Positions 1,921 through 32,840 of a stretch of DNA of 64,000 nucleotides are shown here, one piece after another. This stretch comes from Lytechinus pictus (taxonomy: Eukaryota): contig NC_087246.1 in the NCBI RefSeq assembly GCF_037042905.1, positions 50,220,001 through 50,284,000 on the forward strand. The letters are read 5' to 3'. The stretch's first letter is position 1. Each line of letters starts with the position of its first letter. The position numbers and the translations under genes are program-made. The notes below the pieces were generated by a model, which was given only the letters and a program-made list of their open reading frames with translations, was not told the origin of the DNA and ran no database searches.

Positions 1921-3501
1921 CAGTGGCGTAACAGGCGGGGGGGGGGGGGGCAGGGGGGAGGGCAAGCTGCCCCCCCCCCCCTGGCGGAGCTCACCGGGAA
2001 AATAAATAAAAAACGAGAAAAAGAAAAAAAAGGGAGGAAGAAAGGGAAAGGGAAAGGAAAGAAAAGAAAAAAAGGGAAAGGGAAAAGGGAAGGGGAAAGG
2101 AAAAGGGAAAAGAAAACTAAGAAAAAACATAAAAAAGGGAAAACGGAAAGATAACGGGAAAAGGAAGGAAAAAGAACAAGTGAGAAAGAACAATTCGCCC
2201 CGATATAATACATTAGCATGATTAGTAAGAAAGGGAAATAAATTAAAGATGACAAAAAGGCAAACAAAAGCGGGAAAAAAAGGCAGAATGGAATTAGCCA
2301 AATCTAAATTGGAAAATAAAGAATAGGGACAAGATAACGTACACTATACACTATAACGAGCGGGAAGAAAAATGGATGGTATATAGCATAATGTACGAAA
2401 GTCTATCATAAACGTGCTAAATCTCCAAAGGCTCTGTCCTAGAGTCAAGACCCCGTGCAGTGGAGGCTCTTCATCTGTAACCTTTTATGGGTTCTATAAC
2501 GGGCCCCTATATGGACCCTTCCTGCATTAAGCTTTACGTTGAAGCACTGGCGTACCGGGGGGTGGTTCCACAGCCAAGGGGAAATAAAAGAAAATAAAGG
2601 AGGCAGCGAAATGAGATGAATGAAAAAAAATATATGACATGATATTTGCTATAATGATGTAAAAATCTATCACATAATTAGAATTTCATTTTAACAGGCC
2701 ATTTTTTTTCTGGCTCGCTTCGCTCGCTGGCGACTTTTTACTAATTTTCCCACATTTGCTATGGTGTGCCTCTCACAATATTTGGATGATTACGATACAC
2801 AACTGCATTGAATTTATGTGTTGTGTTAAAGCTATATAAATATACACGCAATTTGATTAAAACAAGTGGCCATCTGTAAGGTTTAAAATGGCTTTGATAT
2901 CAAGAGGTTCCGGGGCTCTGCCCTGGACCCCACCCATAAAGCACTGTTATATGGATGAGTTGGACCATGTTCTACCAAAAGTTCTACAACCAAACAAAAA
3001 AAAAAGAGGAAAGAAAGGAAAGTGTATTATATTTTTCTGAATATCACGTTAAAATCTATCTTCATGTTAGATTCTCATGAAAAGGTTATTTTTTTTATCT
3101 TGCTCGCTTCGCTCGCTCGGGACCTATATTAAGCTACTTCTTGCCAGAAGCGCCATACTCGGCCCCCTCGAGCATATAGAGCTTCGCCCTGATGCTGACA
3201 ATCATAACAAAAATACTGTTCACCGTGGCGTACAAAAAAAGAGAGAAAAAAGGAAAGAGAGGAGGGTGAAATATGATATCATCTTTTTAACATTTTGTCA
3301 AAATCTATCACAAAATTGGATTTTTGCAATAAAAATGTCAAAAAGATTTGCTCGCTCGCTCGCTTATATATATATATTTGCCCGATACGCCATATCGCCC
3401 CCTTAATTTTTTTGCCTTATGACACCATTGCCTGTTCCATGATATGACCGGGAAATTTTTGGCTCTTGCCCCCCTGGCCACCGACCCCTGTTACGCCGCT
3501 G
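1921..3501. mobile_element. Non-autonomous hAT-like element (1.58 kb)
   Basis: TIR CAGTGGCGTAACAGG / CCTGTTACGCCGCTG. Exact 8-bp TSD CTTCCGCC (1913-1920, 3502-3509). Internal purine-rich low-complexity tract; no transposase. Confidence 0.9.
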
Positions 3502-9646: not shown

Positions 9647-12600
9647 ATGGCAATTGAAGTGAAGATCTTATCTCCGAGGAGCAGAGATTCAAGCGTTTTT
9701 ATGTTAATTCTTTCGATTTTCATTGCATTTGGAGAGGGAATACAAGTTTGTGAGTATGATTGATTTCATTAAATTAAATGAAATTGAGATAATGAGAGTA
9801 CAATATCATTATAAAGATCACTCAAATTACCTGGGTACGTACCTCCAGTACAATATTGTCCCGCATACTTATTTCTGCGTAAGTTGACGAAGTTTAAGCC
9901 GTCATTGGATTTGTCACTTGTTTGGTCACTGCACTCGTCCCACTCACACACATGCGAGGTTAGTATGCTATACCACTCACACTAATACGAGGTTCGTATA
10001 TATTATATACGAACCTCGTACACCGGACCTTGTTTGACCGTAGATTTCGAAGTATTCGGCAAACATTGCTTCATTGCTGAAGTAATATTTGCCGAAACTC
10101 CTTCTCGCTACGCACCGGGGCTCTTTCCGGTAAGTAGCAATACATAACAAAATTATACGATATTTAACTCATTTCATTTAAAAAGAGCAAATTTCGCTTA
10201 CCTCGGCCTAGCAAGTGACTTCGTTTGTCTCTTCTACGGAAATACAAGGAAGCCCATTGGTGGCGCTAATAAATTTCACAACCTTGATTCAGCTCCTCGG
10301 TAATTTTATAACTGTGTCTAAATTCTTTGAATGCGCAATTCTTATGATTAATTTACTAATTATGGGCACCAATAAATAAAATACCTTCAAAAACATATTC
10401 AGGATTACTATTGGCGATGATAACACTTTTGTTGCAATTAATTTAAAACGATGACTAATGTAATTTTTTTTTTTTTAAATACATATGCCTGGAACGAAAC
10501 CAGCAGTACAAGCAGTATTAACGAACGTCACGGTATACCAAAGTCTATACAATGAAAATATTGGACACTTCACGGACTTCGCGTTATGCCTTGCGTCGAT
10601 TTGCGTGTAAAATAGTGTAGGTTCCTAATCTTTCCCTTGTCGTGTCTTTGATATGAATATAAATCGCGCGCCCTCTTTAGGCGAAAATTGATATCTACGC
10701 TGACCAAATTTTATCTCCGTGAAATCTTCACTAAAGATCAAGAAAATATACATATTTTTAAGAAAAAACTTCAAGGAGAAGTCACGGAAGGATCTAAATG
10801 ATTCGGTAAGTGTCATAGCAGAATGTGAAATACCAGATTATTGGTGATATTTTATGTGGGCAAAAGCCCACTATCTTTTTGACTTGTCGTGTGTGTCGCG
10901 TGCATATGACTGATATTCCTTCGCACGCGAGATGATATGAACCCATGGCCATGGGTGATGCTATACTAACCTCGTACAAGTATGTGTTTTGACGATGGAC
11001 AATTGATTTGTCCTTCGTCACACGAATTTGGGGTGATAAAACGCATAAAATTTCCCCAAAAGTAAAGCCAACTAAAGTAAAGCCGGCAAAAGAACATGAA
11101 GAACTTCGACTTCAAAGGAAGTGCATACATATTACTGATTACTGTACTCTCTAGACTCTTAATTATCAACTAGATCCACTCACACGTATTGCGAGGTTAG
11201 TATTAGTATACTAACTAGATCTAGATCTATCTGTCCTTGATTTGTCTAACATTAGATCTAGACATATTGTTTTAAAAATATAATCTAAAGTAAAGAGTCT
11301 ATTAACTCTTACCTCCACTCATTCAATGAACAAGGTTATGATGTAACCTTGTTCTCAGTTATATCTCCATGTGTGGCAAAATAAGGGTGGCAATGTTTGG
11401 CTTATTTTCTCTTTTTTCTTTGGGACAAATGCTTGATTTTTTTTACACTGACAGTTTCCAATACACCTATTTGTCATACAACTTAGCTTTTAAATAAATT
11501 TGATTCTTTAAATTATTTTTTTCTTGATTAAAAATAGAGATCAAAAAAAGAAAAATTTCTTGCCATATTACTTTCCACCAACAGAGGGCGTACACAAAAA
11601 TATGCCCAAAAATCAAGTTTTTGAGCGCTCTGGTGAATACAAAAATTATTCCCAAGTTACTAATGAAAAATAAATTGCAACTGTATGGAAATTAGTAATT
11701 TTAGTAAAAAAAGTTATATTTTAATGATTTTTTAAAGTGTGTGCTCCGTACAACATTAGCATACCATAGTCCTACCTGTAGATTCCCCACAGCCACAGGC
11801 AGGATGGTTGCAGTGAACAAGTGCTTACCTCCAGCTCCAAATCTCGGCCAAGATGCTCCGAAGATCCTTTCATACTGCGGTGGAAATCAGGCAAACAACT
11901 GTGTGTGTGTGTTTTGAGTTTTTGTCAGACGTGTATCAATCAGATATGATTATTTACGTCTGGGACTGACCTTTTACATCACCATCTGAAAGACATGACC
12001 AGGGCTCGAACCTCGAATCTCTGTATTCGAAATGTGAATGACCATCTAGGGGAAGAGCTCCTTTAGCGACAGCCACCCAAAAAATTGAAAATAAAAATAT
12101 GGAGAAGGTTCAAAATAATATACATGTATGATGTAAGAGTCACCATGGCGAGACTGCCAAAGACGTTCCTTTTGTTTTGTGAATAGTCTACATGTTATTA
12201 TTCTTTTATATATTTTCTTCACCCAAGATATTCTCATTTGATTTTTTAATTGTATCTTTCAGCGTATCTGTACAATAGCTGCAATACCACAATCCTAGCA
12301 GACATCACAGGCCTTGTAGAGCCAGACAGTAGTCTGCGATACAGGAATAATCAGGACTGCCACGTTGTCCTCTCAACAGAGCCAAGCAAGAAGCTGCTCT
12401 TACAGTTTAACAGATTCGTCTTAGAAGAGGCAGTAAATGGTAAACTAAAGACAGCATTTGATATCAGTTTTCATCCTTCTAATTTTTATTGTTATACATG
12501 TAAACCATCTTGTCCATCATCATTCTCATCATACTCTTTATCATTATCTTTACATATCCTTACTTTTTATTTTTATGCCCCCCCCCCTCTGTAGATGGTT

Positions 12601-15600
12601 TCCAGAGACATCATGTTTTCTGGTTGACTGTCCCTTCTGTTTTCGTTCTCGAGATAATTAAAAAAAATCATTTGTTTGACCGATCATTTTCAAACTGATT
12701 CCAAATATGCAATTATTAGGATGACAATGATCTGGGTCCCGTAACACAAAGTTAAGCGATCAATCGCTGAATGAATTGGCCTATTAGTATCATTGTTGCA
12801 TGCGCATTTTGATCAGTAGGCTGACTAGGAACCAATCAGAATGGCTCTTTCAAATTTACGATCAATTGCTAACCTTTGTGTTATGGGGCCCAGATTATGA
12901 TTTTGGGTATCAGGTTTACAAAGGCCATTGTATACCTACCTGAACGTACACCATTCTAATGATGACTAAAGAACTGTTTGAAGGTCTAACTTCAAACTTG
13001 GTTTTTGTTTTCGTATGGGGAAGGGGGGGGGGGAGATTGCTTCCACAAGTGGTAAAATATGTCTATTTCAGGAATTTCACTGAATGTTTGTTAAAAAAAA
13101 TAACCTTTATTTAAATCGGTAACAAAATCAATTTTTCCAATTTCTCGTTTGTCTTTGCATAATTCAGGAGCATGTGTGGACAGTTTAAGATTGCACGATG
13201 GAGAGTCCGACATGGCGTCACCTTTGACCCCAAAACTCTGCGGCCGACAATCCCTGTCCGAGGTGGTCTCAACCAGTAGCAATGTGACGTTTGTGTTTGA
13301 AACAGATGATACTGGGGTTAGCCTCGGATTTGGAATTCTGTACACAGTGTTTGAAGATGGTGAGTCATATACAGGTGGAGCTCGAGGTCTTTGAAGGGAC
13401 TGAAGTTTCATGTATCTGTGAAACAGGGCTTTGCTGTTACAGCTAGTGTACCTAGTATTCTACATAATGGTATTGCTGTATTTGAATCTACATGAAAATG
13501 TATACAGTTGTAGGGGTAAAAACACATTTTTAAAAATTTCGAGTTGTATTGTTCGAAACAAAAGAGGAGGGGGTGGGGGATTGAATGCAAACATTTCTAA
13601 GATTAACTGTGGTTTAAAACTTTAGAAGCTAAGGGAGATCTGGGGCTTGTTTCATAAAGGACCTGCAACTTTTGTAACTTTGCCATAATGGCAACTACCA
13701 TGGCAACAGGGCTCAGCAGCCAATCAGAATCAAGGTTACCATGGTAGTTGCCATAATGCCAAAGTTACAACAGTTGGAAGTCCTTTCTGAAACGGGCCCC
13801 AGATGCATCTGTTCCATGCAATTTTTATATAACATCTCATGGATAGACTGATGAAAAATAATCATTCAGGTTTTGAAAATTGAATTAATTCCATTCTTGT
13901 ACAAAGATAGCATGTCATCAGAAACTTTGTGCACTCTCAAGGGACTTTCGATATTTTTTTACCCTAGCTATAGCCTGACAGCCTTTTACAGAACACAAAC
14001 ATTTCAAGGAACTGATTCCTGCTGGGTAGCTATTTACCTTCCCTTGGGTCAAGTATAAAAAGTATAAAAAGGTAAAATTCATGAAATATGTGTCTGCCAA
14101 AATATTGGCCAGTAAAAGTATGCCAAAATATTGGCTAATAGATCTATGCCAAAAATCAGCCTTTTATAGAATGTGAATTTAACGATATAAGTGTAATGGT
14201 ATGGGCATATTAAATGATGAGAATTTAGTTGCATGTATATATGAAACCTAACATCCTTTTTCATTCACATTCTTCTTCAGCACCATGTTCAGCGGGTCAG
14301 TTTCAGTGTAACAACAGCCGGTGTATTGATTACTCTCTAATCTGTGATTCACTGGACAACTGTGGAGATAACAGTGATGAGGCACAATGCATGGGTAAGC
14401 AACTCAAATGTCTTCTTTTCTCCATGCTTCACAAAGTTACTTGTAATTCTTGCTTTGCCGTAGCAGAGGCAAATACTTTTGTGCTTTGCAGGTTTACATG
14501 GTGGTGAGACTAGATGACCAAGTTCTCAGATACACCATGTAAGCTAGTCGCGAAAAGGACTGTTGGGTGATCTTTCGGATAATAGTTCATCCACGTTTTG
14601 ACTCTGTTTTGAGCTACCAGAAGTATTGCCCATTACCCCATTAAGGCCACCATTCACATTACGACTGTTGTATGATCTGAGTTTAGGACAAACAGCATTT
14701 GTATTTTGCATATGCTCTTATTTAATTAAACAAACAGATCAAGAGGTTCAGAATAAGTTCTGCAATAAAACGAGTCTCATTGATCATAAGCCTCTAGTTT
14801 GGAGTAATGGCAAAATAGGCATTTCTATTTTAAGCTGATTCTATGAATGCTATGAAACCATTAATATTATGGATTTAAATTAAATTTTATGCCAATATGG
14901 AGGAATAAAATATCCATAAATTTCCACCCATTGATTTAGAACTTGGACGGTAGTATGTTCTGTGTTGTAAACTTTCCTCAAATGTTTTGATGTTTTATAT
15001 CTAATTAGGTCGTACATGTCATGTACCTACACAAGTCGTAAAATGTGCGGTGGTGTTTACTCATCATAATTAGTTTTTGTACTCTTCGGGAACTATTTGT
15101 ATGTCATGTTATAATATAGTGCTTTGGATTCTAATCAAATGATTGGCTGAAATCTATCACATGACCAGACTTTTTGTGTTAACTGAAGCTAAAATTTGCT
15201 AATGAGTGGTATTAATTAATAGCAAGTTCAATTGACCGGTTATGGTTTGGAGATGAGGATGGATTATCAAATAACAAGGACCCACATTTTTATAGTGATA
15301 ATGATTCACAGCAGTTGCACAGTGCTTTGAATCTGTTTGAATAACATTTTTGGATGCCTTCACACACAACTACCTGATAAACCATGTGTTTTGAGTGAAA
15401 CCTTGGAAGATCCAGAGACGTGGCAAATATTGCCATGTAACATTGTTTCCTATTGCCTTTCTCATCTCATTATCATTTCAATATGTTAAGCCTCTGGAGC
15501 TCCGATCACTACTTTTAGAAGTAAAGCGTTCAGCGCTTTATTATTTTTCCAAGTTTAAATCTAAACAATATTAATGTAATCCCAGTCCTCCCTCACTAAT

Positions 15601-15913
15601 ATATTTTTTATTGAAGCAAACACTCCATGTACTTATGTATGTTTACCTCATCAGTTTGAAACAATATCTATATACTTTTGGTCTTCTCTATTTACTTTGA
15701 TCAGATGTCATCGAAACATCCAGTGGTCTAACGCTAGGTCAGATTGTCCTCATCGCTCTCGGAGGCATCGTGGTCATTGTCATCGTCATCTTCATCGCCA
15801 GATCACTTGCACAGAAGATCCGCTCCAACAAGCTTGTGAAGCAGCTCAGAGCCGACATGGACAACTCCAGGGTGGACAACGAGTATAGCAATAAAGACTT
15901 CTGGGGCAAGTGA
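9647..15913 (+). CDS. Gene A: single-pass CUB + LDL-receptor class A + transmembrane protein, ~264 aa, 5 exons
   Basis: Exons 9647-9749, 12263-12439, 13168-13359, 14281-14394, 15705-15913. All introns are GT-AG and phase 1; total 795 nt. ATG lies in a CAAAATGG context. Exon 1 has a hydrophobic leader ([15 protein letters not shown]). Exons 2-3 encode a CUB domain ([42 protein letters not shown]). Exon 4 is a canonical LDLa ([35 protein letters not shown]). Exon 5 has a TM ([19 protein letters not shown]) and a short tail ending DFWGK*. Exon 1 is the least certain. Confidence 0.88.
11785..12050 (-). mobile_element. tRNA-derived SINE (sea urchin SURF-type)
   Basis: Minus strand has B-box GAGGTTCGAGCCC followed by GATGGTGATGTAAAAGGTCAGTCCCAGACGTAAATAATCATATCTGATTGATACACGTCTGAC and a (CA)n tract. 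The family name is from recall. Confidence 0.7.
12732..12893. mobile_element. ~160-bp CWG-flanked MITE (PIF/Harbinger-like)
   Basis: CTG-GGTCCCGTAACACAAAG ... CTTTGTGTTATGGGGCC-CAG. Similar elements at 13640-13802, 16419-16695, 32282-32439, 38479-38629, 39315-39501 and 44731-44960 (truncated). Confidence 0.75.
13640..13802. mobile_element. CWG-flanked palindromic MITE
   Basis: CTGGGGCTTGTTTCATAAAGGAC ... GTCCTTTCTGAAACGGGCCCCAG, with internal inverted arms. Confidence 0.8.
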
Positions 15914-18178
15914 TGGAGCAGGAATAGACATGACAGGCCTCTTGGGTAATTTAGCAAAGTGTAGTTGGCCCGCCAAAATGTGTAAGGAATCCAACGTTAA
16001 TAATGGTTGATCACACAAAATACACACACTTTACACAATTGAAATCATGTGTTTTGGGATATCATTTTTTTATAGGAATATTAATTTTTCCTCGAGACCC
16101 GATTTTCTTGAATTTTTTTTCAAGTTTCTCACAATATATATTTTGAATAGATATCATGGTTTACTTTGATATTAGCTCTGTAAAAATACCTTTGTATGTT
16201 TGTGTTTTGTTGGTTACCTAAATTGAAGAGTGAAGACCATGCAACTCAATGAATTTCTTCTGATTCCAGTAGTACCTGCTGCAGCGGATGCCTAGAATGG
16301 TAAATAATAATAATCTTTTGAAAGACTCCATACACAGTAAAAAATTGCAAACTGCTTTAAATCTTTGTAAGTGACTGGACATTCACAAGTACAAATTTGT
16401 CAGGTGAATTTACCAGGCCTGGGCCCCACCTTACTAAGAGTTAAGATTGATCCAATCAACCTCAACTGTATGGAAATCTATCATTGTCATAATTTTTTCT
16501 ACATGAACTTTGCACAATATCCTTAGTAAACAAAGAGAAGCACACTGAATTTTTAAGAAAACAATGAATGTAAGAATTTTTAGCATATCTAGAAAATATT
16601 TTGAACAACACATACAATTTAGATGTTGACGTTGCTGGCTTTCCATAGTAGTGGTTGATCACATCAATGGTAACTCTTCATAAGACGGGGCCTTGGAATT
16701 TACTGATGAGGCGCATCATAAAATTCCCCTGTGTTGGGAATGCTTCCCACGAAGTGATGAAAGTGGATGTAACAAATCTTATTTTTCAACAACATTAATA
16801 TCATGAAAGAGGGAAAGAAATTATTACCAATGTACATATGTAATGTTCATTTGGGTGGCTTGTGGCCTTTTGTGAAAGCTGTTACTTTTCTATCTAATAT
16901 ATCCTTTCATCTATGAATTTTATAGAAAGAAATATATATACTTGACAAATTATCAATCAAGTGCTTTTTGAAATCATACATATATATTGATTATTTTTTA
17001 TACTTGTATATAAATATTTTGCACTGGAAGTACTTTAGACCTCTTTGTCTTTCATACATTTATTTGCGATAATTGTGAATATACTTTAAGCATTCCTGGG
17101 TGTGCTGTTTGTCTTTCTATTTATTATTGTATCCGTCCAAACATCAATGTCAGTGAATCAATATAATATTGTTACATAGCTCAGTACAACCTAAAACATG
17201 TTGTTGTAGTGTGATGATAGTTTCATGATATATTTTTCTATAATATTTTGTAGAGAAATAAAGGAAGTCTTAATTTAGATCATGTACATAATTTAAATTG
17301 AACAAAAGTGTTGCATGTAGTACAAGTACATGCAGATAACACTTAATTGTGTTTAGTGTAAGATCATGCTCTAAGTAGATGGGTATTCATTAACTTGACT
17401 TTTAAGAATAGCTTACTCGTTTGAGATCACAGAAATTTGCCTGCAGTCGACTGAAACATGCTTCCCGTTCCGATCAGCCTTCAAGCTATCGCCTAAAGTT
17501 GATACTGCTGGAGGGAGGCAAAGCATGTCTTGTGGATGATCTAGATTTGTCCCGCTTTATTGAAAATTAGCTAGCTATGTTTGAAGTGAGGTTTTAGAAG
17601 AATTATTTTTTGGGGGGGATTGAAATTAAGCGTTCGTTCCACCATCTTTACATAATTTTATGCAACTGGTGTGATGGCACCTGCTATATACAAGTTATTT
17701 TTTATGAAAAGTTTGTTATTAATGGTAGCTATACTCTGGTAACAGGTCTTAGCAGCCAGTGAAATCAACATTTCCTGTTAGTTACCAAGACAGTAAAGCT
17801 ACTATAATAGTATTCAACGGGACCCTATTATGTAATACGGCTGTTATAGACAAGGAAAAGCATGCTATTCTTGAATTTCAAAATGCTGTCTTATAGATGC
17901 ATGTTTCTACATGAAAATAATTGGAGATATCGAATTTGTCTTTCTGCTTTGTACACAAACATGAGATATTCATATTAAAAGTTTGTTTTACAAATTACAC
18001 TTAGACACAAGTCTATTCCTTGTAAGTGTTAAGCCTGCATTCCTAACACTGAACACCATCTATTCCCCTCTTCTTTTACCCGATTTAGTTGATCAAAGAA
18101 GGAAACAAAAGTGAATATAGGTGGAGAAAAGGGTATAGACAAGCAGTAAGAGAGATATAGCAAGAGGTGATACTGTAA

Positions 18179-18262
18179 GGCCCGAATTCACAAAGGTGGT
18201 TTCTGCAAAACCCACGGTTGAAACCATGGTTTCTGCAGAAACCACCTTTGTGAATTCGGGCC
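18179..18262. mobile_element. 84-bp palindromic MITE
   Basis: GGCCCGAATTCACAAAGGTGGTTTCTGCA / TGCAGAAACCACCTTTGTGAATTCGGGCC is a perfect 29-bp inverted repeat. Confidence 0.85.
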
Positions 18263-19088
18263 AAAGAGTATCATGTGTATGTCTGTGTGGGGAAGGGATA
18301 TGTGTCCGAGAGAGAGAGATTTGGAGAAAGGGAACAAAAGAACGAGAGAGAGATAAAGAGGAGAGAAAGAGTCAGAGAAGATAAAGAGGAGAGCAAGGTG
18401 GAGATGGAATGATTCTGTGATATTTCACCACATCTGCCCCCTTTCCTCACACAGCCACAGGTTTGACTTTGCACCTTTAATGTCATTACTTACTGTGAAA
18501 GCTGAAGACCAATGTCCCAAAGGGAGCAATTTTATATTGAAACTGCATCTTTCACAAAGAAAAGCACTTTTAAATGAGCTCTCGGTGTGGCATTGGCAAA
18601 GGTGCAAAGTTTAACCTAGCACACTTTATCATCTCTACCTCTCTATTGGGCAGTGTTATTGCTTCAACTATTACCATACCTTACTATTGTATACATTGTC
18701 AGCAAACAAGCACATTGCAAATCTCAAAGAATATCTTTTATTCCAAATATACTAGTTTATTACAACGTTTTGCTCTTTACAAATGAATGATCAAATTTGA
18801 TAATCTTCACAAATCAGTGATAAAAGTTGGATATATTTTTGGTCCTGTCTTTGTAAGGTTTAACTATGGGTGTATAATGCTTACATTTACCATTTACAAT
18901 GTTTCTTTCAAATCAACCGATCTTTCGTTCGAACTTCAAAGTTCTTGCTCAAATTTCCCAAAGGAAAGGATGAAGAATATATGTACATATATTTGGAAAT
19001 ATGGAAATATATACTAGTCCTGTATATATTATAGGTAATTGCAAATTTGCATAAATCTTCAATTTAATCAGTTTATCTTCCTTTTTTC

Positions 19089-22000: not shown

Positions 22001-25000
22001 GGACTAGGAGGTAAAGGCTGAAACAGGCGGAAATATCATATTTCCTTTTACAATACTCGTAGTATATCATGTCAACAATATTTAAAAAAAGTAGAAATCA
22101 TAACCAGCAAAAGAATGTTGGATTTGTCAGTGGAGAGACATGTAATCTGACTTTTGAAAAATACTAATTATTATCTTTACCAGTGGCGTCATTTACCAGC
22201 AATTTTGAGGGGGTGAATGTTTTTTTGTACGCGATGCACTATTTGCGAGAGAGAGAAAGAAAAGCGAGATAAAACTATTAGTTGAATTGCGAATAGTTTT
22301 AATAATCTATTTGGCACGCAAAATATATTAGATTTACTATGTTGAAAATACAATACAATGATTTGAAAATAATAACAACCAGTAGATCAGTGCTTTTACC
22401 ATTATCAAATGAAGTGACGAGGAGTGTGATGTTGGCCGCGGCTGATTCGTTGAGAGCGAGCCTGATTGTCAAGAACTGACCAGTAGACTCGAAGCTTACC
22501 GGAGTCTCTGTGCCGCAGTATCGACCAATCAGCTCGTCCGTCTCAGAGTCATCTCCATCCCATATCATCAGAGAGGATCTTCTGCAACCTTGTCCGTCTG
22601 GTATACTTGGGTTANNNNNNNNNNNNNNNNNNNNNNNNNNNNNNNNNNNNNNNNNNNNNNNNNNNNNNNNNNNNNNNNNNNNNNNNNNNNNNNNNNNNNN
22701 NNNNNNNNNNNNNNNNNNNNNNNNNNNNNNNNNNNNNNNNNNNNNNNNNNNNNNNNNNNNNNNNNNNNNNNTTTTCATATTCGTATTCAATGTTTGAAGG
22801 GGCACACCGGTGAAGCATTTTGCGTCTCTATCAAAATAGTTCATACTATAAAAAATTTCCAAATATCATTAATATTGTACAACCCTGATATGAAGATTCA
22901 ACAATGACGTAAAATATGAAAATCAATGAGTCACTATTTTATCTAGAGTAGCTGGAGTAGGCAATGATAATTATTGTACTTCAAATTACAGAGGCTGAAC
23001 GCAAACATTAGCCCCACCCCACCCCACCCCCCCCCCAAGAAAAAAAAGGTCACAATCTTCACGATCTTTGATCTTTTCAACTGCTGATATTTTGTCTAGG
23101 TAATGTAATTGACATGATTATGCCCAAACGATGAAAGAGAAATAAATTTAATTTATTAAAATTCCCGACCTAATTGGTGCCCTCAAAGCTACGATCACTT
23201 ATCCCTCAGTCACATTTCCCCTTCGGCGAGTAGAAAAAACGGCCGTTTTAACATTCTTTTGTACCAGCTACATGTACGTGATTTGAATAAAAATGATTCA
23301 AACGGCCGTTTTAGACTCGCCATACGGCCGCCCTAGGGAAAATGTGACTGGATATAAATTAGCAATGGGCATATCCCAAAGCAGGACATCCAATTTGACA
23401 AACATTACGAAGAAATAATAATGGGTAGACAACTTAATCCAGCGGAGAATATATTACCGCCAATTAATATCATAAAGAAAGGCCTTTTTATCTTGTTTGT
23501 TATCATGAAGAAAATCCTTTAAAAAAACAAATAGCCCGATGTATTTAAACTTTTTGAGGAAATCTGGGATATCGACACTCGGATATTCAATTTGACATGC
23601 ACGCAAGCAAACATTACCACAAGGTAGAACTTGCTTTATAGACTTGATCAGCAATGTGGTTTTGGCCTATTGTGTTATTGTTTATCATTTATTCCACATG
23701 TTTATTCAAAAGTAATATAAATCATTATTTATCAAGTAAGCTTGAAGATTGATTATCATTATAATTGCTTGGTTTTGATTTATTGATATCATGGATTATC
23801 GTCTATTTGAAAAGTGATGACTTTTACTGGTGNNNNNNNNNNNNNNNNNNNNNNNNNNNNNNNNNNNNNNNNNNNNNNNNNNNNNNNNNNNNNNNNNNNN
23901 NNNNNNNNNNNNNNNNNNNNNNNNNNNNNNNNNNNNNNNNNNNNNNNNNNNNNNNNNNNNNNNNNNNNNNNNNNNNNNNNNNNNNNNNNNNNNNNNNNNN
24001 NNNNNNNNNNNNNNNNNNNNNNNNNNNNNNNNNNNNNNNNNNNNNNNNNNNNNNNNNNNNNNNNNNNNNNNNNNNNNNNNNNNNNNNNNNNNNNNNNNNN
24101 NNNNNNNNNNNNNNNNNNNNNNNNNNNNNNNNNNNNNNNNNNNNNNNNNNNNNNNNNNNNNNNNNNNNNNNNNNNNNNNNNNNNNNNNNNNNNNNNNNNN
24201 NNNNNNNNNNNNNNNNNNNNNNNNNNNNNNNNNNNNNNNNNNNNNNNNNNNNNNNNNNNNNNNNNNNNNNNNNNNNNNNNNNNNNNNNNNNNNNNNNNNN
24301 NNNNNNNNNNNNNNNNNNNNNNNNNNNNNNNNNNNNNNNNNNNNNNNNNNNNNNNNNNNNNNNNNNNNNNNNNNNNNNNNNNNNNNNNNNNNNNNNNNNN
24401 NNNNNNNNNNNNNNNNNNNNNNNNNNNNNNNNNNNNNNNNNNNNNNNNNNNNNNNNNNNNNNNNNNNNNNNNNNNNNNNNNNNNNGATCAATATTTTGGA
24501 GTGAGCGGCAATTAAAAGTTACAAAAAAATGCCCAAATTATAATACAGAATTTTCATGGGGTGATCACGGGTAGGGGAGGGGGCTATTTCAATTGATTAA
24601 TTTAACATTACATCATGATGGAAAGCATGTACCTTCGAGTAGGAATGGTGGAACGAAGACGGCAGCGATCATCTGGTTTGATTTGAGAGCCTGGACGACC
24701 ACGGTGCAATCCTGAGGGCCCGTGATGTTCTCGAAGGTTGCTGACGTCACAATAAAGCTAGCGTCCTTTTTCTGAAGACTTGCATCACAGACGCTTGTCA
24801 AAACAACTTCATACGGCATAATCAAAGAGAAAGGGATTATCAAAAATATTGCTAAATTTTCAGAATAAAATGAACTTAGAATTGTATGATAACGCTCTGA
24901 CATACGGAGTTAAATCTGATCAAAATCTTATATCCTAGGGGAGAAGGTGCAGGGAGGTTTTTGATATCTCATCAAATTCAAATAAAAAGAAGAGGTCTCT

Positions 25001-26461
25001 TGCGTCTTTAGTACCCTTATCAACTCGAATTCAATTGACTTGCTTTTTTCGAAATAAATAATGAGCGCTCCAAAATGGGAAACGATTGAGGAATTTGAGA
25101 TAATTCCTAGCTAAGCTAAAACGTTTTATAAAGATTGAGAACAGAAATGGTATAAAATGCCTACCTTGGTCACATCAGATATGATTGTAAAAACTTAAGC
25201 TACTGTACATGAAATTTCTTTAACTCGCAAAACAGAGTAGGAGACAGATATATGCAGGGAGGAAATATATCTTCCCGCGAATGGCGTTGATGCTCTGAAT
25301 TTTAGAAATTTCTCTGAAACTTTAACCTGCCCTAATGTTGATATTTCTTAGATTTCATAACTCGATTGCGAAGAAAAAAAGAGCTCAAAATTTGAAAGGG
25401 ATGATGCAGGCTAGAAGAGGCACGCGAAGCACGGAAACCCCGGCGTAAACCTCTGTGATTTATTTTGAAAGAGAAACAATTGTGTAATTTCGCTCATTAT
25501 TAAGCGCTTTCTTTTGTTTGATTAGGAAAATTCAGTGTTATTAAAAAATTCGAATCAATGGCAAAAAACAAGACAGGAGATGGCTGTACAGCGATATAAA
25601 ACAAAGTTTCATCGTACATACTTTTGCATATATAGCACAGCACGAATTTACGGCCTCCCCTTTGAAAAGATACTTTGCCAAAAATTGCTTGCTGAAAAGC
25701 GGAAGAAATAGCATTTGGGGACTCGGGGAGTGAGAGCAGAAAGTTTGTGTCGAGGCAATTGAAAAAATGCTTTTCATACTTCTTACACTCATGTTCACTT
25801 TATAATTTCTGGCAAAAATATAGGATTCCCATCGCCAGGAAGGGGAAAAACGGAGTAGAAAAAAGGTGTGGGGAAACAAAGAGAAAAGGCAATTTCGATA
25901 TTTTCCCGCGCGGAAGCAAAATTTTGTACGAAAAGAGAGAACTTCTCGTTTAGCGGGTTATTATCATTTAGACAAAAATATAAGAAAGAAAAAACAAAAA
26001 AGCTATACCCATCTTCCTTTTTCTCCCTTTGCTTTTTCTTTTTTCTCCTTTCCCCCTTCTTTTTTTTCTTTTTTGTGGCGTTTTTTTTTTTTTTTTTTTT
26101 TTGGGGGGGGGGGGGCGACCGTCCCTGGCTACGCGCCTGTTCCTAGTCTTATTTATACCATAATCATAATTAATCATAAAAATTCATCATGCTAGTATAC
26201 TTAAATATTATTTCACATAAGACGTCTCTTTATTCGGTGCATGTTTTGTTTGATACTGCATTTTCTTCTGTACTGATAATAATTATAACGAAGATGATTA
26301 AGAGGAGGATGTTGATGGAGTTCAGATGAGAAAAGTAAAAAAAAGCGGAGAGATGAAAAAGCATGCAAAATCAAATCATGAAAATTACCTGTATTTGTAC
26401 TTCCGCTGACGATGACGAAAAGAATATTCACCAAACATACAAAGAACTGTGACGTCGCCAT
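19089..26461 (-). CDS. LDLRAD2-like: Gene B: CUB + LDLa + transmembrane protein with long Cys-rich, repeat-containing cytoplasmic tail, 5 exons (5' edge of exon 3 is in an assembly gap)
   Basis: Exons (minus) 26461-26389 signal peptide [20 protein letters not shown]; 24806-24633 CUB N-half ([11 protein letters not shown]); >=22614-22400 CUB C-half ([29 protein letters not shown]); 20677-20543 LDLa ([35 protein letters not shown]); 19891-19089 TM ([24 protein letters not shown]) plus tail. GT-AG, phase-1 junctions. The LDLRAD2 similarity (NCGDxSDQxxxxPAxC) is recalled, not searched. Confidence 0.85.
21158..21412. mobile_element. hAT-like MITE inserted in a (CTT)n-rich tract
   Basis: TIR CATGGGCGGAAATC / GATTTCCGCCCCTG; exact 8-bp TSD ATTCTTCC. 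Confidence 0.88.
21708..21918. mobile_element. hAT-like MITE
   Basis: TIR CAAGGGCGGATCCAGG / CCTGGATCCGCTAGTG; degenerate TSD ACTAGAAT / ACTATAGAAT. Confidence 0.7.
22615..22771. other. Assembly gap covering the acceptor of gene B exon 3
   Basis: Run of N. Confidence 1.
23207..23350. mobile_element. Small palindromic MITE
   Basis: CAGTCACATTT ... AAATGTGACTG termini, with an internal inverted AAAACGGCCGTT pair. Confidence 0.7.
23833..24485. other. Assembly gap in gene B intron 2
   Basis: Run of N. Confidence 1.
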
Positions 26462-28176
26462 TGTTGTTACATGGTCTGGGATTATTATAAGCCTACTCAA
26501 GAAGACGTTGACATAATTATTGACATGTTGAAATCAGCAATTTCCAATTCTCACCTTTTTTCTCTGTAGATAATATAGCTCTCTGTTTTTGCCGTTCAAA
26601 ACTGTCATGTGCGCCGCCGTCATAATGAATTATTTGCAAAATAAAATTGAAATAATGTTAGATTATTATTGGTATTCCAGACAGATCATAATCAACATCA
26701 TATTAACTAAATTCCATCAAAATTAACTGCTGAATCTCCAGTTAAAAAAAACACAAAGAAGACAGGGAATTCCTCCGTCTCATCCAATGTTGAAATCATA
26801 TCAAACTGCAGGCTTCCATGTCAGACTTTTTTTCAAAATGGCGCCGGGTAGTTCTCCTTCAGATCAAAATACACTTTTCCCTGGAAATGCACTTCACCTT
26901 GTACCGCCTACATTTCAACCTTTGTAATAATTGTCCAGGGAGACGGCACGCATCGTATCTAATCTGCGATAAAAATCCTCATTATTGAATTCAGATTTTT
27001 TCAGGTCGCACTTAGATGTTAATTAAACCGCCGGACGAAATACATTCTGTATAATAATATGCTGTTGTCTTGGCAACGCAGGACGCATGCTGTATGTGTT
27101 CACTTCACACAGCTCAGTGTTGTGTTTCTGTGTTAAAATATAAATTGACGTCTCTCTGGAATATCATGTTTACTTAACACGATCAGATTATTTGCGATGT
27201 ATTCTTAAGTAAATGTTTAGAGTGAATACTGTGTGAATATTACTCGATTTGGTGCTGGTCTGATTATGTCCATAACTCGCCCTCCTTTTTGGTGCACGAA
27301 TGTTTTTTTTTAAATCTCTACCATGGGATTTAGCTACCCCTTCCGTCAGTTGATTGCGTCGTTCCCTCGACTTTTGAAAATCCCTCGCTGTATACGCAAA
27401 GGGCTGTGATATTCATAGTGCAACTGGCATTTCCCCTTGGAATTACTTTTATTAAATATCGAATATAAAGATTATTTTTGGATGATGCTCTGATGGTCTA
27501 TTATCATAATGTAATAGAGTGGATCATTTTTATTTTCAAAACCAAGGATATGTTTAATGTATGCTTAAAACTGTCGGTAAATTTCCTTGGGCATCACAAT
27601 TTTTGTTAGAATTCGTCCGAAACTGGGCAAATTGTGACCAAATTTGATCAAGATCAATGGACCAATTATTTGTGTAACGACCCAACGTTGATTGGATATT
27701 AGTTAAAATACTAACCATAACCATTTAAAAGGTATACATTTGATTCAAAATCGTAATTTACAACATAAACTGCATGAATGTGGATATTGACTTTGAGGGA
27801 TGCTTCGAAGAAGAAAGTTTGCTGGCAGTGAATGTAAATTATATAGCTAAAAGAATGGAAAACCATCATAAATAGGAAATAAAATTAAGAAGATTGTGGG
27901 AAATGAATAATGGAGCTCGAAAGAGAGAGAGAGGGAGAGAGGAAGGGTGAGAGACGGAGGAAACTAGTAAATTAGAATGAATTACAACATTCAAAATATA
28001 GTAATGGAAAGAAGAATATACTGGACAACATTCTTTAGTACTTAATTCAAGATTTTACAGTACTATAGAATAATGATAAATCTATGGGTATACATTTCGC
28101 CCGATGAAACGATTTTAATTACGGCTCAATGATACATTGAGCAGATCTCGAAGAGCTTGGAAAGGCAAAACAATAT

Positions 28177-28339
28177 CAGGGGAGCGTTTCATCAATATTT
28201 TCATCCGACAAGTTGTCAGATCTGACATATTTCCATGATTTTGATTGGCAAAGAGGCACTGTTCCTATGGTAACTGTCGGATAGAATGGGACTTGTCGGA
28301 TAAAACGTCCGACAAGTCCTTTCATGAAACGCCCCCCAG
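28177..28339. mobile_element. CWG-flanked MITE, CCGACAAGT family
   Basis: CAG|GGGAGCGTTTCAT ... ATGAAACGCCCCC|CAG. The same family occurs at 29422-29819, 44009-44164 and 62988-63143. Confidence 0.88.
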
Positions 28340-28823
28340 AAGAAAGCGAAATGTCATGGATATTAATTGAGGTGATGATATATCCTGGATATATAATTAA
28401 GTGTCGCCTTTATTAACAAAAAAAAATGCACATTCACCAAGATCAGCACATATTTTTACAGTTTACATAACAAAAAAGGGACTACATACACTTCAAACAT
28501 TACAAAAGCAAAAGAAAACGGGAACAATTATGCAATTAAAAGTTACATAAAACTGGGTTGTTGCATGTTCTTGTTGTTTTTCTTTTTCTCCTTCGTCGCC
28601 CCTTCTTCTTTCTTCTGTTCTTCTTCTTCCCCCCTTCTCCTTCTACTTCTTCTTCTTCTTATTCTTCTTCTAGCTAACAGGCTTAAGTGTTGACCTTATT
28701 TCCTCTCACCATCTTACATTTTTATTCTATTCATTTGTTGTTATATGCCTATAAAAAAATCTTAGCGTCACTCCAAACGAACAATGTCTGTCAAGTTCTA
28801 TCAAAATAATGCAAGAAACACTA

Positions 28824-31800
28824 CTACAGCATTTTCTCTCTGTGTATTTTTCTGCCTTCTCGAAGATTGCCGACCGAGTTCATCTTCGTTGCTCGTCGAC
28901 CACAGGTGCATATTCGACGACACAGCCCTCGACTTCGAACGGGGCAGCACCATCCACAGTCGCCCAAACTTCGGCGTCGCCAACAACCACAGGCCCATAC
29001 CATGTAGCCGGGTCTCCAGAAACAGAAGTAGAGGAGGAACAGGAAGGGGAGGATGAGGGCGAGGGCCGCGTATAGAAGAGGGCGGAGGTCGGGTGTCGTG
29101 TAGATTACTGTCGATATGAAAATAATTCAGTGGTAATTTATTTGTGATTCAAAATATTTCTTCTTTAAATAGTTGAATTTTGTGACGGATTTGACGTATT
29201 TTTTAGTCAGAAAAATAATATAATCTATATCCCTTCCTTTCCTTTTTTTTCTTTGTCGGCAAAATGAGGGTCCATGACCCCACCACCCATCTGTACACCA
29301 ATGACAAGCTTATAACCTTCAGGAAAAGGTACAAGTGTAGTGACCAAATTTCATATATCATAACCGTTAGGATCATTAAATTGGAGAATAGGTGAGGGGG
29401 ATGTCACATCTCATCATTACACAGGAAAGCGTTTCATGAAAAGACTTGTCAGACGCTATATCCGACAAGTCCTGTTTTACCAGACAGTTACCATAGTAAC
29501 AGTGCCTCTCAGCCAATCAGAATCAAGCAAAGTTGTCAGATCTGACATCTTTCCATGATTTTGATTGGCAGAGAGGCACTGTTCCTATGGTAACTGTCGG
29601 ATAAGATGGGACTTGTCGCATAAAACGTCCGACAAGTCCTTTCATGAAACGCCCCCCAGGAGAGTGTTTCATCAACATTTTCATCCGACAAGTTGTCAGA
29701 TCTGATATCTTTCTCTGATGTTGATTGGCTGAATGGTACTGTTACTATGGTAACTGTCGGATAAAATGGGACTTGTCGGATAAAACGTCCGACAAGTCCT
29801 TTCATGAAACGCCCCCCCTGGTCTCATTTACTCTTGATGAATCCAAATACAATCATATTCAAAGTAAAATTATGATCTCGTTGATCAGGTGTTTACCGGG
29901 GCAGTTGGCTTCGTCCTGATCGCTGAAGTCCTCATCGCCGCAATTGCCATACCCCTGCCTGTCACACGTCACGGTCGAGTCGATGCACCGACCCGTCGTC
30001 GTACACGTGAACGATGAACAGGACGTATCTAGATGAAACAAGATCATGAAGGGAAAAGGTGGATTATCATGTTGAAGGAGAGGGGAACACTGATAAAAGG
30101 GCAAAGAGGTTATAGAAGGGAGGGTGATAGAAGATTAAGATGATGGTGACGTGAAGATCAAGAAGATAAAGCTTGATGGGGGAGCGTGGGGATGGAGTCA
30201 CCCCCTTAGAAATAGGAGAAAATTGGAGAGAGAAGTGGGAGATGTACGGAGAAATGAAGTGTTTTTGACATGCCCTGTCTTTCAGACAAAGTCTAATAAA
30301 TAAATGAATCCCGAAAGTAAATCTATCATTTAATTCAAACACTATTTCAAATTATTTTACATAAGAAACTATAAATAGCAAAATAGCGTGGACAATGATG
30401 CATGTTTCAAGAAAGGACACTTATTATCAGTCCCCAAACAATACCTCCACAAATACAATGTGCGATGATTTTCCTCTTTTTATACTTTAGTCCTTCTAAC
30501 GGGATAGCCGTCCGTGAGAAATACATTTCTTATTGACGATTACTCTCAGTAATTTTTCGTTACCTTAAGTGTAGTGTCCGTTAGGCCTATGTCTTTTTAT
30601 GCAATCATGCCAATTTCGATGCCAGAATTACAGATCTTTAAGATTTTGATTGATGTACATGAATGTCTATCAACTTTCATTACTGTCTGAAAACGCAGTG
30701 TAGATGGCTCTGAAGTCCATGACACTGAAATCCCCGGATGTTTGTAATCTCAACGATAAGCTGCTCCCTGACGAAAGAACAAGGGTTGGTCTGTCTGTAC
30801 CGCACAGCGTGTCACCGAGCTGGCTAGAGGATGCGATGGGACCATCGAAAATTCGCACACTGGCATCATCACAATTGTCATTTGGAAAGCCATACCTAGA
30901 AAAAAAAGATGGAGTCGAAACTTACTGGTCAGTCATCCTGATATGCTCGGCGTTTGCCAGTTTAATTTGTAAATTCATCATCGTCATCCTAGAGTGGTTA
31001 TTGTCATTTTACAGACTATCATGTGCTGAAAATGTGTTTTTAAGACATTGTGATAGGATTATTTTAATTACATCCATTTCAGAATGCTGGTGATTGATCA
31101 TCGCCATCATGACGACATTTTCGTCACCCATTCCGTCATTTCAATCGTCATTTTGCACCATCGTCATCATCTGGACTGACTTTTAACAATGCAAGCGAAT
31201 GAACTTAAAACGAATTTATTGAGCTCTAAAACATTCCATTACGTTCGAAGAATTTACTGAAAGGTGATAATGATTTGGCAGAGAATAAAAAATATCTGCT
31301 GGAAGATGAAAAAAGCAAAAATGAATTGAGGAGTGACCGTCAACACTCAAATACTCTGACCTACTCCTATTTTATTTGTGGTGTTTTTGGCTTTTTCATT
31401 AAGGTTTTACTTATATACTTTACTTTTTTTATTTCGCTGTGCTTGCCATATCCTTTTCTTTTCCAAAATCATCCTATATATAGATGTACGAGAGAGCGCA
31501 GCGAACGACGAAATAATGAAACACATCTATGTGGAAAGGAACCTTATTTCACACTTTCCCACATGTTTTCACATATGGGTATGAGAAAAATTAACGGTAC
31601 TATCGCTTGATTGATTGGATGAAAAACTTGTTTAACTTCTATTTTCAAATTTGATACAAATATATTGTTAAGCCACACTAACAATCAGAATGGGGGTAGG
31701 GGGCAAAATTTGTACCACATCTCGTGTGATATTTTTAAGTCCATTTTTTTTATACTTACCTTCTATTAACATCAAACCATCGAAAGTCCACCATTACTCT

Positions 31801-32840
31801 GGTATAAGGGTCATTTGCCTGGAACAGATATGAACAATCTATTGTGACGTTATACAGGTCAAAGGTTAACTGGTTTGAATGAGATTTCAACTCCTTGCTG
31901 AATGAATCTGCGTCTGACGTTGTTGCTAAGCAACTGCCATCATCGGAAATGAGAATATCTGTTTCGATGAAAACAACAGCATGATTGGATGATAAGAAGA
32001 AATATTTTGATGGAGTTTTTATCTACAGGAATGTTTGAATTTATTTTTATCTTTATTCCATCAAACTTTCTTCATTTTTTTCGTGTTCAACTGGTTTCAA
32101 AAGTTATACTGAACTTTGAACTAGCATATAGATGGCACTTGTGAAATAACATATTTTTCCTTCGCTTTCGAGGGATTGCGGAATGGAAGTCTGTTGTCAA
32201 GTCCTCCTTCCTGAGACCATCAATCAAGTTGATATCCATACGAATCTCTACCGGGGAAAGTCAACCATCATACTACGAGAACAGGGACCTATTTCATTAA
32301 AACTTGTTTTAATAACAAATTTGCAATTACAGTTAAAAGCTTCTGAAATCCGACATTCTGATTGGCTGATAGTAAACTTGTTGTAGATATTTTGCATTTG
32401 TTGTTTAAAACAAGTTTTTTTTAATGAAACAGGACCCTGGGCCCAAGAAAGAACCATCAAAATATGTACAATACATAAAAAGATTGCTATTAGTCACAAT
32501 GTACGCGAAATGTATTTTTTTACGTGAATAGTGCGATGGCTCTTTTCACCCCCTACTTGAACAAATCGTATTTTTTACCGAAGAGTAATAAACTAAACAA
32601 TAGATAACAAATAAAAATCATAGTGTCGGGGAAAGCTTCCCAATCCTCGCCCCTGTAATATAATTAGAGCTCTCATAAATTTGATGGACAATGATAAAAC
32701 AATACATGTGATACACACCTACCTGTTGCTATGTCAGGCTGATTTGCAGTATCTCGTACCGTCTGCCTCGTCAAGCAAGCCTCAACACTCCTAATTGTGA
32801 CGAGCCATAGAAAATAAAATCTGATGGCATTCCTGCCCAT
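28824..32840 (-). CDS. LDLRAD2-like: Gene C: CUB + LDLa + transmembrane protein with Cys/Arg-rich tail, ~314 aa, 5 exons; paralogue of gene B
   Basis: Exons (minus) 32840-32723 (MGRNAIRFYFLWLVTIRSVEA, CAAAATGG context), 31958-31760 (YNVTIDCSYLFQA, VMVDFRWFDV), 30895-30684 (NCDDASVRIFDG, LCG, LSLRLQT, DFRAIYTAF), 30028-29897 (FTCTTTGRCIDSTVTCDRQGYGNCGDEDFSDQDEANC), 29107-28824 (TM LLYAALALILPFLFLLYFCFW, then RPGYMVW...KML*). Intron phases 1,2,1,1; total 945 nt. Confidence 0.86.
29422..29819. mobile_element. Compound CCGACAAGT-family MITE locus (palindromic hybrid plus an adjacent normal copy)
   Basis: 29422-29659 is symmetric about TGTCAGATCTGACA. 29657-29819 is a standard copy sharing the CAG. 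Confidence 0.85.

Follow-up and report, generated by a model that had tools for sequence, protein, structure and literature searches.

Three neighbouring genes of the sea urchin Lytechinus pictus raise the question whether they form an old array of related membrane receptors, and which role such an array may have in the cell. The window, a stretch of 64,000 nucleotides (NC_087246.1, positions 50,220,001 to 50,284,000 of the forward strand; coordinates below count from its first letter), had been described in an earlier note as holding three divergent paralogues with one ectodomain plan and different tails. The genes were present where the note had placed them, with open frames and canonical splice sites: A (+, 9647-15913), B (-, 19089-26461) and C (-, 28824-32840), the interval ends 9647 and 32840 being the ATGs of A and C. 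Each has five exons with GT-AG sites, except that the acceptor of B exon 3 is hidden by an assembly gap. Gene models bore out the proposed orientation: A and B converge, and C lies in tandem with B. The common plan of the products comprises a signal peptide, one CUB domain encoded by two exons, one LDLa-type module, a membrane helix and a tail. By inspection, every spliced product has a hydrophobic N-terminus and a single helix of about 23 aa, as in a type I protein. Only one CUB domain is present per protein, and in alignment all four CUB cysteines were found in A, B and C. Tails of about 38, 233 and 64 aa agree with the roughly 40, 230 and 60 aa given before, and the C-termini read FWGK, REAR and KML, respectively. 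A, B and C were confirmed as real genes for CUB-LDLa single-pass membrane proteins; they are intact and spliced as modelled, with the reservation that the five-exon model of C is only probable.

The features of gene A were the following:
9647-9749, + strand: exon 1, ATG and signal peptide, phase 1 donor (splice site and open frame, RefSeq match)
12263-12439, + strand: exon 2, N-terminal CUB half (matches positions 1-50 of the Pfam CUB profile)
13168-13359, + strand: exon 3, C-terminal CUB half (matches positions 51-110 of the Pfam CUB profile with E 8e-7)
14281-14394, + strand: exon 4, LDLa module (PF00057, 44 bits)
15705-15913, + strand: exon 5, helix at 15728-15799, Cys-free tail of 38 aa to FWGK, stop (open frame)

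The product of 264 aa differs at two residues from the L. pictus RefSeq protein XP_054748476.1, and at full length it scored 48.8 bits for CUB and 41 bits for LDLa in Pfam. Its tail motif is kept in urchins and a sea cucumber. RefSeq names the protein "LRP12-like". LRP3, LRP10 and LRP12 are proteins of about 700-860 aa with two CUB domains interleaved with several LDLa modules; A shares with them CUB and LDLa modules and one membrane helix, but with 264 aa, one CUB and one LDLa it falls outside their definition. The name is a misnomer that reflects domain similarity without orthology.

For gene B, the following features were identified:
26389-26461, - strand: exon 1, ATG and signal peptide (ATG equals the start of the annotated 470-aa L. 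variegatus orthologue)
24633-24806, - strand: exon 2, N-terminal CUB half (protein 100% identical in L. variegatus)
23833-24485: assembly gap in intron 2 (L. variegatus needs no exon there for its 470 aa)
22615-22771: assembly gap hiding the exon-3 acceptor and the first few codons, left unfilled
22400-22614 at least, - strand: exon 3, C-terminal CUB half, running on into the gap (RNA contigs; Pfam CUB 26.4 bits)
20543-20677, - strand: exon 4, LDLa in which the Cys5-Cys6 loop is longer and SDQ replaces SDE (PF00057, 32 bits)
19089-19891, - strand: exon 5, helix, WRPGYIIW, Cys clusters, acidic run, repeats, stop (RNA contigs, dN/dS)
19791-19862, - strand: membrane helix
19767-19790, - strand: juxtamembrane WRPGYIIW
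19704-19760 and 19545-19574, - strand: Cys clusters
19239-19475, - strand: five Pro-rich repeats of 16-17 aa

The earlier note had called for RNA evidence of splicing, and exons 3-5 of B were seen spliced in RNA contigs from two studies: both joints flanking exon 4 were present, among them the joint from 20676/7 to 22399/400, and the 3' UTR extends to about 18742. RNA contigs in X1, X15 and X16 are collinear and unspliced up to 22614 and carry 237-818 further nucleotides beyond. The acceptor of exon 3 therefore lies inside the gap at 22615-22771, and thus a few codons of B are unread in this assembly. In the gap-free L. variegatus gene, a phase-1 acceptor was found 10 nt beyond the equivalent of 22614. 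Candidate acceptors at 22597 and 22585 were rejected, as the RNA contigs cross both without splicing. Orthologues of 470-471 aa, annotated as "uncharacterized", exist in L. variegatus, S. purpuratus and Diadema; that of L. variegatus consists of the same five exons, and a word-indexed protein search with a 273-aa B segment of S. purpuratus retrieved these orthologues. At full length, they matched CUB at profile positions 1-103 with 22.9-27 bits (Pfam cut-off 21.4) and LDLa above the cut-off with 26-29 bits. Against a local CUB profile, built from 1524 unrelated CUB domains, the CUB of B covered positions 2-104 with 50 bits.

Gene C was modelled from these features:
32723-32840, - strand: exon 1, ATG and signal peptide (size and splice donor equal in L. 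variegatus)
31760-31958, - strand: exon 2, N-terminal CUB half carrying an insertion, phase 2 donor (199 nt in L. variegatus and S. purpuratus)
30684-30895, - strand: exon 3, C-terminal CUB half (Pfam CUB 17.5 bits, under cut-off)
29897-30028, - strand: exon 4, divergent LDLa-like module with six Cys and two insertions (PF00057 11.8 bits, E 0.3)
28824-29107, - strand: exon 5, helix at 29019-29087, WRPGYMVW at 28995-29018, Cys/Arg-rich tail, stop

The Pfam check for PF00431 and PF00057 proposed in the earlier note thus succeeded above the cut-offs for A and B, while C, searched exon by exon only, stayed below them. Exon 4 of C matched PF00057 over its full length, but below the Pfam cut-off; the six cysteines and the CGD...SDQ signature are kept, and the module is also present in L. 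variegatus and S. purpuratus. With the local CUB profile, spliced C reached 51 bits. Between L. pictus and S. purpuratus, DNA similarity in the region of gene C is limited to the five exons. Sizes and GT-AG sites of all five are identical in L. variegatus and those of exons 2-5 in S. purpuratus, where exon 1 is 12 nt longer. Protein identities to L. variegatus and S. purpuratus were 93% and 88% for exon 2 and 94% and 82% for exon 5. The NCBI models for C are shorter (233 aa in L. variegatus, 220 aa in S. purpuratus) and have no Pfam match. Gene C probably has five exons and a predicted product of 314 aa, and the two NCBI models would lack the N-terminal half of the CUB domain.

B, C or both could instead be copies in decay, or exons wrongly joined that belong to one larger gene. 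Both are highly divergent, their CUB N-terminal exons taken singly had no CUB match in Pfam, the two NCBI models of C lack the first two exons, and an old S. purpuratus model of B had 668 aa. This reading is very improbable and already largely refuted by the intact frames and preserved exon sizes in all species, by dN/dS values of 0.13-0.16, by the spliced B mRNA with its 3' UTR and by the concordance of the current 470-aa B models in three genera; moreover, the stop codon of C lies 2.4 kb upstream of the ATG and signal peptide of B.

An old array had been proposed, and comparison with other echinoderms agrees with this. The order C-B-A is kept in L. pictus, L. variegatus, S. purpuratus and Diadema, so that its synteny spans the split between Diadema and the camarodonts. 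Purifying selection acts on A, B and C, on the tails as well; dN/dS between L. pictus and S. purpuratus was 0.13 for exon 5 of B and 0.16 for C. In S. purpuratus and Diadema, a fourth member, D, stands head to head with A; the D gene of L. pictus is intact and located 17.4 Mb away on the same chromosome. We infer an ancestral cluster D(-) A(+) B(-) C(-) from which D later moved in Lytechinus. The microsynteny suggested for inspection was thus retained in urchins, but the A-type gene of a sea cucumber had no B, C or D neighbour within 10 kb.

Are the three genes paralogues, as the earlier note had assumed? For B and C the motif WRPGYxxW is decisive. It occurred twice in the 812-Mb genome, directly after the helices of B and C, and a control with the reversed pattern gave one match. 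Since the motif was found only in these two genes, B and C are certainly duplicates, and they arose by tandem duplication. Searches of the L. pictus genome with their CUB C-terminal exons gave weak generic CUB matches and no mutual best match, and the tail exon of C matched only itself. Among 1358 CUB domains ranked for similarity to the CUB of A, those of B took ranks 860-1143 and those of C ranks 370-566, so that the CUBs of A, B and C are mutually no closer than to hundreds of others, and the top nine matches of the CUB of D all belonged to the A family. The nearest relatives of A are D, its ancestral neighbour, and A2, an unlinked copy on another chromosome. In a tree of 83 CUB domains, each gene family was resolved, the relations among the families were not. 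An AU test of a single clade gave p 0.48, which neither supports nor rejects it. By the CUB sequences, an ancestor shared by A, B and C is neither indicated nor rejected.

These similarity ranks would suit a juxtaposition of two unrelated lineages, A/D/A2 and B/C, with an architecture that resulted from repeated module shuffling. The intron that splits the CUB domain fits this origin as well: it is in phase 1 and two codons before the third Cys in A, in phase 2 and eight codons before it in C, near the fourth Cys in D, and absent from the sea-cucumber gene. Hence, of the one exon plan claimed for all three genes, the number of five exons held, but not the position and phase of this intron. We regard the two-lineage origin as unlikely. 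Four genes of the same rare architecture adjoin in S. purpuratus and Diadema, a single clade was not rejected by the AU test, and the LDLa modules of A and B are 54% identical over 28 residues. All family members also lack the usual Asp before LDLa Cys5, which is only suggestive, because the background proteins contained only 10 LDLa modules.

Characterised CUB/LDLa membrane proteins are few (NETO, SOL-2, LEV-10 and CULD), and each proved to be a key partner of a channel or receptor. CULD of Drosophila has one CUB, one LDLa and one membrane helix and acts in endocytic trafficking of rhodopsin and TRPL in fly photoreceptors (PMC4732287). A, B and C, the last with its LDLa-like module, share this architecture; the likeness is one of domain order and number. 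The ionotropic glutamate receptor auxiliary subunits NETO1/NETO2, Drosophila Neto and C. elegans SOL-2 are type I proteins with the CUB-LDLa-helix order found in A, B and C. Residues 54-230 of A are collinear with NETO2 194-370 (CUB2, LDLa, helix) with an E-value of 3e-20, and the Diadema orthologue of A carries the NCBI name "NETO2". NETO and SOL-2 carry a second CUB and end in a PDZ-binding motif (PMC9083331), whereas A, B and C have a single CUB. A PDZ-binding C-terminus is absent in all three: none ends in a class I motif (S/T-x-hydrophobic), and a non-hydrophobic position -2 excludes class II. LEV-10 of C. elegans, a type I protein with CUB and LDLa, clusters a ligand-gated channel via its ectodomain (PMC9083331); unlike A, B and C it has five CUB domains, and its LDLa is dispensable for function. 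The cluster belongs to the CUB/LDLa family that includes Drosophila CULD and the two-CUB proteins NETO and SOL-2. As regards orthology to vertebrate LDLRAD2, the protein searches made for orthologues brought up no vertebrate sequence. A literature search on LOC100888991, an identifier of gene B like LOC121409431, and on sea-urchin CUB/LDLa single-pass proteins yielded nothing relevant.

The best explanation, which we hold with moderate confidence, is a conserved echinoid CUB/LDLa cluster in which the ectodomain docks on a membrane partner and the tails provide a coupling specific to each paralogue. As in CULD, NETO, SOL-2 and LEV-10, the small ectodomain would dock with the outer region of another membrane protein, be it a channel, receptor or transporter, and each tail would supply its own intracellular coupling. 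The tail of A is short, basic then acidic, and ends with FWG; that of B combines juxtamembrane Cys clusters, putatively palmitoylated as judged from the alignment, with an acidic run and the five Pro-rich repeats as possible docking sites, and that of C is compact and rich in Cys and Arg. In alignment, the calcium-binding acidic residues of canonical CUB domains were kept in A and D and two of the three were lost in B. Together with the change from SDE to SDQ in the LDLa module, this makes it likely that B, and probably C, contacts its partner otherwise than A. For A, B and C we can only infer such an accessory or trafficking role.

Endocytic or scavenger receptors of the LDL receptor, LRP or cubilin type use CUB and LDLa modules for the capture of soluble ligands and their tails for uptake, and the same could be assumed for the products of the cluster. 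The modules of LRP2 and cubilin, which bind soluble ligands, were the best PDB matches to single modules, and the RefSeq name of A points in this direction. Such a function is nevertheless improbable for proteins with just one CUB and one LDLa each, in whose tails neither NPxY nor a clear YxxPhi or dileucine motif was seen by inspection; calcium-cage residues are lost in both modules of B in alignment, and A is collinear with the membrane-proximal half of NETO2, not with an LRP.

The docking of partners may also have been specialised further. D, A, B and C could be dedicated auxiliary subunits, anciently clustered and so far echinoid-specific, each associated with a different receptor or channel. 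The B/C tail would then be a previously undescribed module, WRPGY with multiply palmitoylated Cys clusters and, in B, the repeats, which anchors or sorts the complex. No named protein or Pfam domain was seen to resemble these WRPGY-plus-Cys-cluster tails or the Pro-rich repeats of B. This extension is speculative, and we consider it rather doubtful; if true, it would present a new way to build auxiliary-subunit tails, and the conserved tails would be tractable in L. pictus.

Proteins of the CULD/NETO kind are already known, and A, B and C are unstudied additions; until a partner is identified, the gain stays modest. Sea urchins retain a small, very long-conserved CUB/LDLa cluster with tails constrained as strongly as the ectodomains. 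Public genomes leave two of its genes without a name or with incomplete annotation, and corrected gene models for the cluster are an outcome of this analysis. As L. pictus is genetically tractable, A, B and C offer specific targets for knock-out. In a comparison with the language-model clusters of the Atlas, those closest to B, with a score of 0.95, held CUB+LDLa proteins of arthropods and nematodes, 300-370 aa long; the arthropod ones have about 310-320 aa, and the resemblance is to be taken as a lead only.

Manual reading of all frames and splice signals gave three neighbouring genes at 9647-32840, each with five exons and canonical GT-AG ends at every intron. Frames, splice sites and domain scores confirmed the cluster of three CUB-LDLa-TM genes proposed in the earlier note, with corrections to exon 3 of gene B and to intron positions.

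Gene models and assembly gaps
9647-9749, 12263-12439, 13168-13359, 14281-14394, 15705-15913, + strand: exons of gene A, product 264 aa
26389-26461, 24633-24806, 22400 to at least 22614, 20543-20677, 19089-19891, - strand: exons of gene B
32723-32840, 31760-31958, 30684-30895, 29897-30028, 28824-29107, - strand: exons of gene C, product 314 aa
23833-24485: assembly gap in intron 2 of B
22615-22771: assembly gap cutting into exon 3 of B

As had been described, A is convergent with B, and B and C lie in tandem. In all three genes, a hydrophobic N-terminus is followed by a four-Cys CUB domain (exons 2 and 3), a six-Cys LDLa-type module (exon 4) and the membrane helix with the tail (exon 5). The three contrasting tails were also recovered: about 38 aa without Cys in A, about 233 aa with Cys clusters, an acidic run and five Pro-rich repeats of 16-17 aa in B, and about 64 aa, rich in Cys and Arg, in C. 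The membrane-adjacent Cys clusters of B and C are candidate palmitoylation sites. Further CUB or LDLa exons were not found elsewhere within the window.

RNA contigs from three runs of two studies covered B from a 3' UTR extending to about 18742 through exon 5, the joint 19891 to 20543, exon 4 and the joint 20676/7 to 22399/400. CT..AC ends were found at each of the two joints, equal to GT..AG on the minus strand. The splicing of B was thus borne out at these two joints, but not at the acceptor of exon 3, which had first been placed 17 nt short of the gap 22615-22771. This placement was ruled out: beyond 22399/400 the contigs are collinear with the genome up to 22614 and continue for 237-818 nt upstream, therefore exon 3 extends into the gap. 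The L. variegatus orthologue is free of gaps, and its phase-1 acceptor sits 10 nt past the equivalent of the gap edge; a few codons of the L. pictus exon lie unread inside the gap. The L. variegatus exons of 73, 174, 225, 135 and 806 nt encode exactly the annotated 470 aa, thus no exon is hidden in intron 2 of B. An unspliced transcribed stretch (16719-17982), lying between the A and B stop codons, was present in contigs of three runs. Stranded raw reads at 16650-17640 had the first mate on the minus strand, implying + strand RNA. The stretch is probably a roughly 2-kb 3' UTR of A.

Pfam scored A with 48.8 bits for CUB and 41 bits for LDLa. Single exons of B reached 26.4 bits (CUB C-terminal exon) and 32 bits (LDLa), and full-length B orthologues exceeded the Pfam cut-offs with 22.9-27 bits for CUB (profile positions 1-103) and 26-29 bits for LDLa. 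C, searched against Pfam exon by exon only, gave 17.5 bits for the C-terminal CUB half and 11.8 bits for LDLa. On our own CUB profile, made from unrelated multi-CUB proteins (1524 CUB domains), spliced B scored 50 bits (profile 2-104) and spliced C 51 bits (profile 20-116); therefore both CUB halves are real in B and C. In the alignments, the acidic triad of calcium-binding CUBs is retained in A and in the further family member D; B has lost two of the three positions and carries SDQ in place of SDE in its LDLa module. These replacements suggest that B, and probably C, binds in a different way.

With the C-terminal CUB exon as query, a profile search retrieved a 264-aa RefSeq protein (XP_054748476.1) differing from our model of A by two residues. 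A is already in RefSeq, under a misleading name. Its orthologues comprise 265 aa in L. variegatus, 268 aa in S. purpuratus (84% identical) and 257 aa in Diadema antillarum (66%), the last auto-named NETO2. Diadema also has a more distant A-type protein of 298 aa, and the sea cucumber Apostichopus one of 263 aa. The B orthologues are all annotated as "uncharacterized" (S. purpuratus LOC100888991 and L. variegatus LOC121409431, 470 aa each; Diadema, 471 aa). C is under-annotated: the NCBI models of 233 and 220 aa in L. variegatus and S. purpuratus lack exons 1-2 and have no Pfam hit. The protein encoded by these two exons is conserved at 84-93% in L. variegatus and 54-88% in S. purpuratus. The C gene of L. 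variegatus has identical exon lengths (118/199/212/132/284 nt) and splice sites; that of S. purpuratus has an exon 1 longer by 12 nt, the remaining four exons being the same. Between L. pictus and S. purpuratus, DNA similarity over C is confined to the five exons and dN/dS is 0.16, therefore C looks like a constrained gene; the last exon of B, mostly tail, has a dN/dS of 0.13. No paper on any of these genes was found in a literature search. A, B and C are new, unstudied members of a known protein kind.

The neighbourhood is retained in L. variegatus, S. purpuratus and Diadema, where the B orthologue is the convergent neighbour of A, with the C orthologue upstream of B in the same orientation. 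B, C or D were not detected within 10 kb of the sea-cucumber A-type gene. In S. purpuratus and Diadema, D, also a CUB-LDLa-TM gene, is the head-to-head neighbour of A; it was not found within 10 kb of A in L. variegatus. In L. pictus it is intact on the same chromosome (G000:C2:67.67 Mb), 17.4 Mb from the cluster. The fourth cysteine is missing from the LDLa module of D in L. pictus (3267-3404 of locus L011), S. purpuratus and Diadema, therefore one canonical disulfide cannot form. Intron 3 of S. purpuratus C (L008:6068-6254) contains a degenerate, frame-broken extra copy of the LDLa exon upstream of the functional one. On L. variegatus CM031016.1, a block of p450, Gln-synthetase, A and B occurs twice, at 31.04 and 23.87 Mb (loci L003, L004); in the second, no B gene is called and the B tail matches as two pieces overlapping in the query. 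A segmental duplication or an uncollapsed haplotype could account for the doubling.

The proposed paralogy of the three genes held for B and C. The whole 812-Mb genome contains back-translated WRPGYxxW just twice, once in B and once in C, each time immediately behind the helix (reversed pattern as control, one hit). The helix-plus-juxtamembrane segments of B and C share 36-54% identity; judged from sequence, B and C are certainly paralogues. For A, the evidence of paralogy with them is solely architectural. Among 1358 CUB domains, B ranked 860-1143 and C 370-566 for A; C ranked 55-99 for B. All best matches of D belong to the A family. D also clusters with A in the CUB tree, in which each gene family had a support of 98-100 and relations between families were not separated. 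A single A+B+C+D clade was not rejected in the AU test (p 0.48). An unlinked paralogue of A, A2 (contig C5), is 54% identical in the C-terminal CUB half. The common five-exon plan of the cluster holds only approximately: the intron ahead of the third CUB Cys is in phase 1 in A and B, with about ten extra residues there in B, whereas the CUB intron of C is in phase 2, 8 codons ahead of this Cys. In D it lies near the fourth Cys, and the sea-cucumber A-type CUB is encoded by one exon. A starfish protein (Acanthaster planci XP_022084129.1, 478 aa) has two CUB and two LDLa matches, and each of the two CUBs groups with the families of A and D; it is possibly a natural tandem form, or else an annotation that fused two adjacent genes.

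A is collinear with CUB2, LDLa and membrane helix of NETO2 (E 3e-20); B aligns with the C-terminal part of NETO2 CUB2 plus the LDLa module (8e-7), and its CUB with the a1 domain of neuropilin-2 (2e-13). The nearest Atlas clusters of B, arthropod and nematode CUB+LDLa proteins of 300-370 aa, provide a lead only. Drosophila CULD, like A, B and C, has one CUB, one LDLa and one helix. CULD traffics rhodopsin and TRPL; ligand-gated channels have NETO, SOL-2 and LEV-10 as auxiliary or clustering partners (PMC4732287, PMC9083331). In analogy with these, the ectodomains would dock onto a further membrane protein, and the tails, distinct and conserved, would couple differently inside the cell. The interpretation in the earlier note is partly supported: the genes form an old array with distinct tails, and their role as accessory co-receptors would be an analogy with these proteins.

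Other features were observed in the window. On the minus strand, 54589-55665 holds an uninterrupted open frame of 359 aa that resembles a rhodopsin-type seven-helix receptor (GPCR) and is unrelated to the cluster. Two stretches, 21028-22022 in intron 3 of B and 18043-18440, have very deep RNA contig coverage of both strands and many aberrant joints; they resemble interspersed repeats or pieces of transposons. A repeat about 140-160 nt long has several copies in both orientations at 28176-28370 and 29376-29919, just downstream of the C stop codon and in intron 4 of C, as well as in locus L002 (about 2500-3000); members of this repeat family are also arrayed in tandem at the 3' end of A2.
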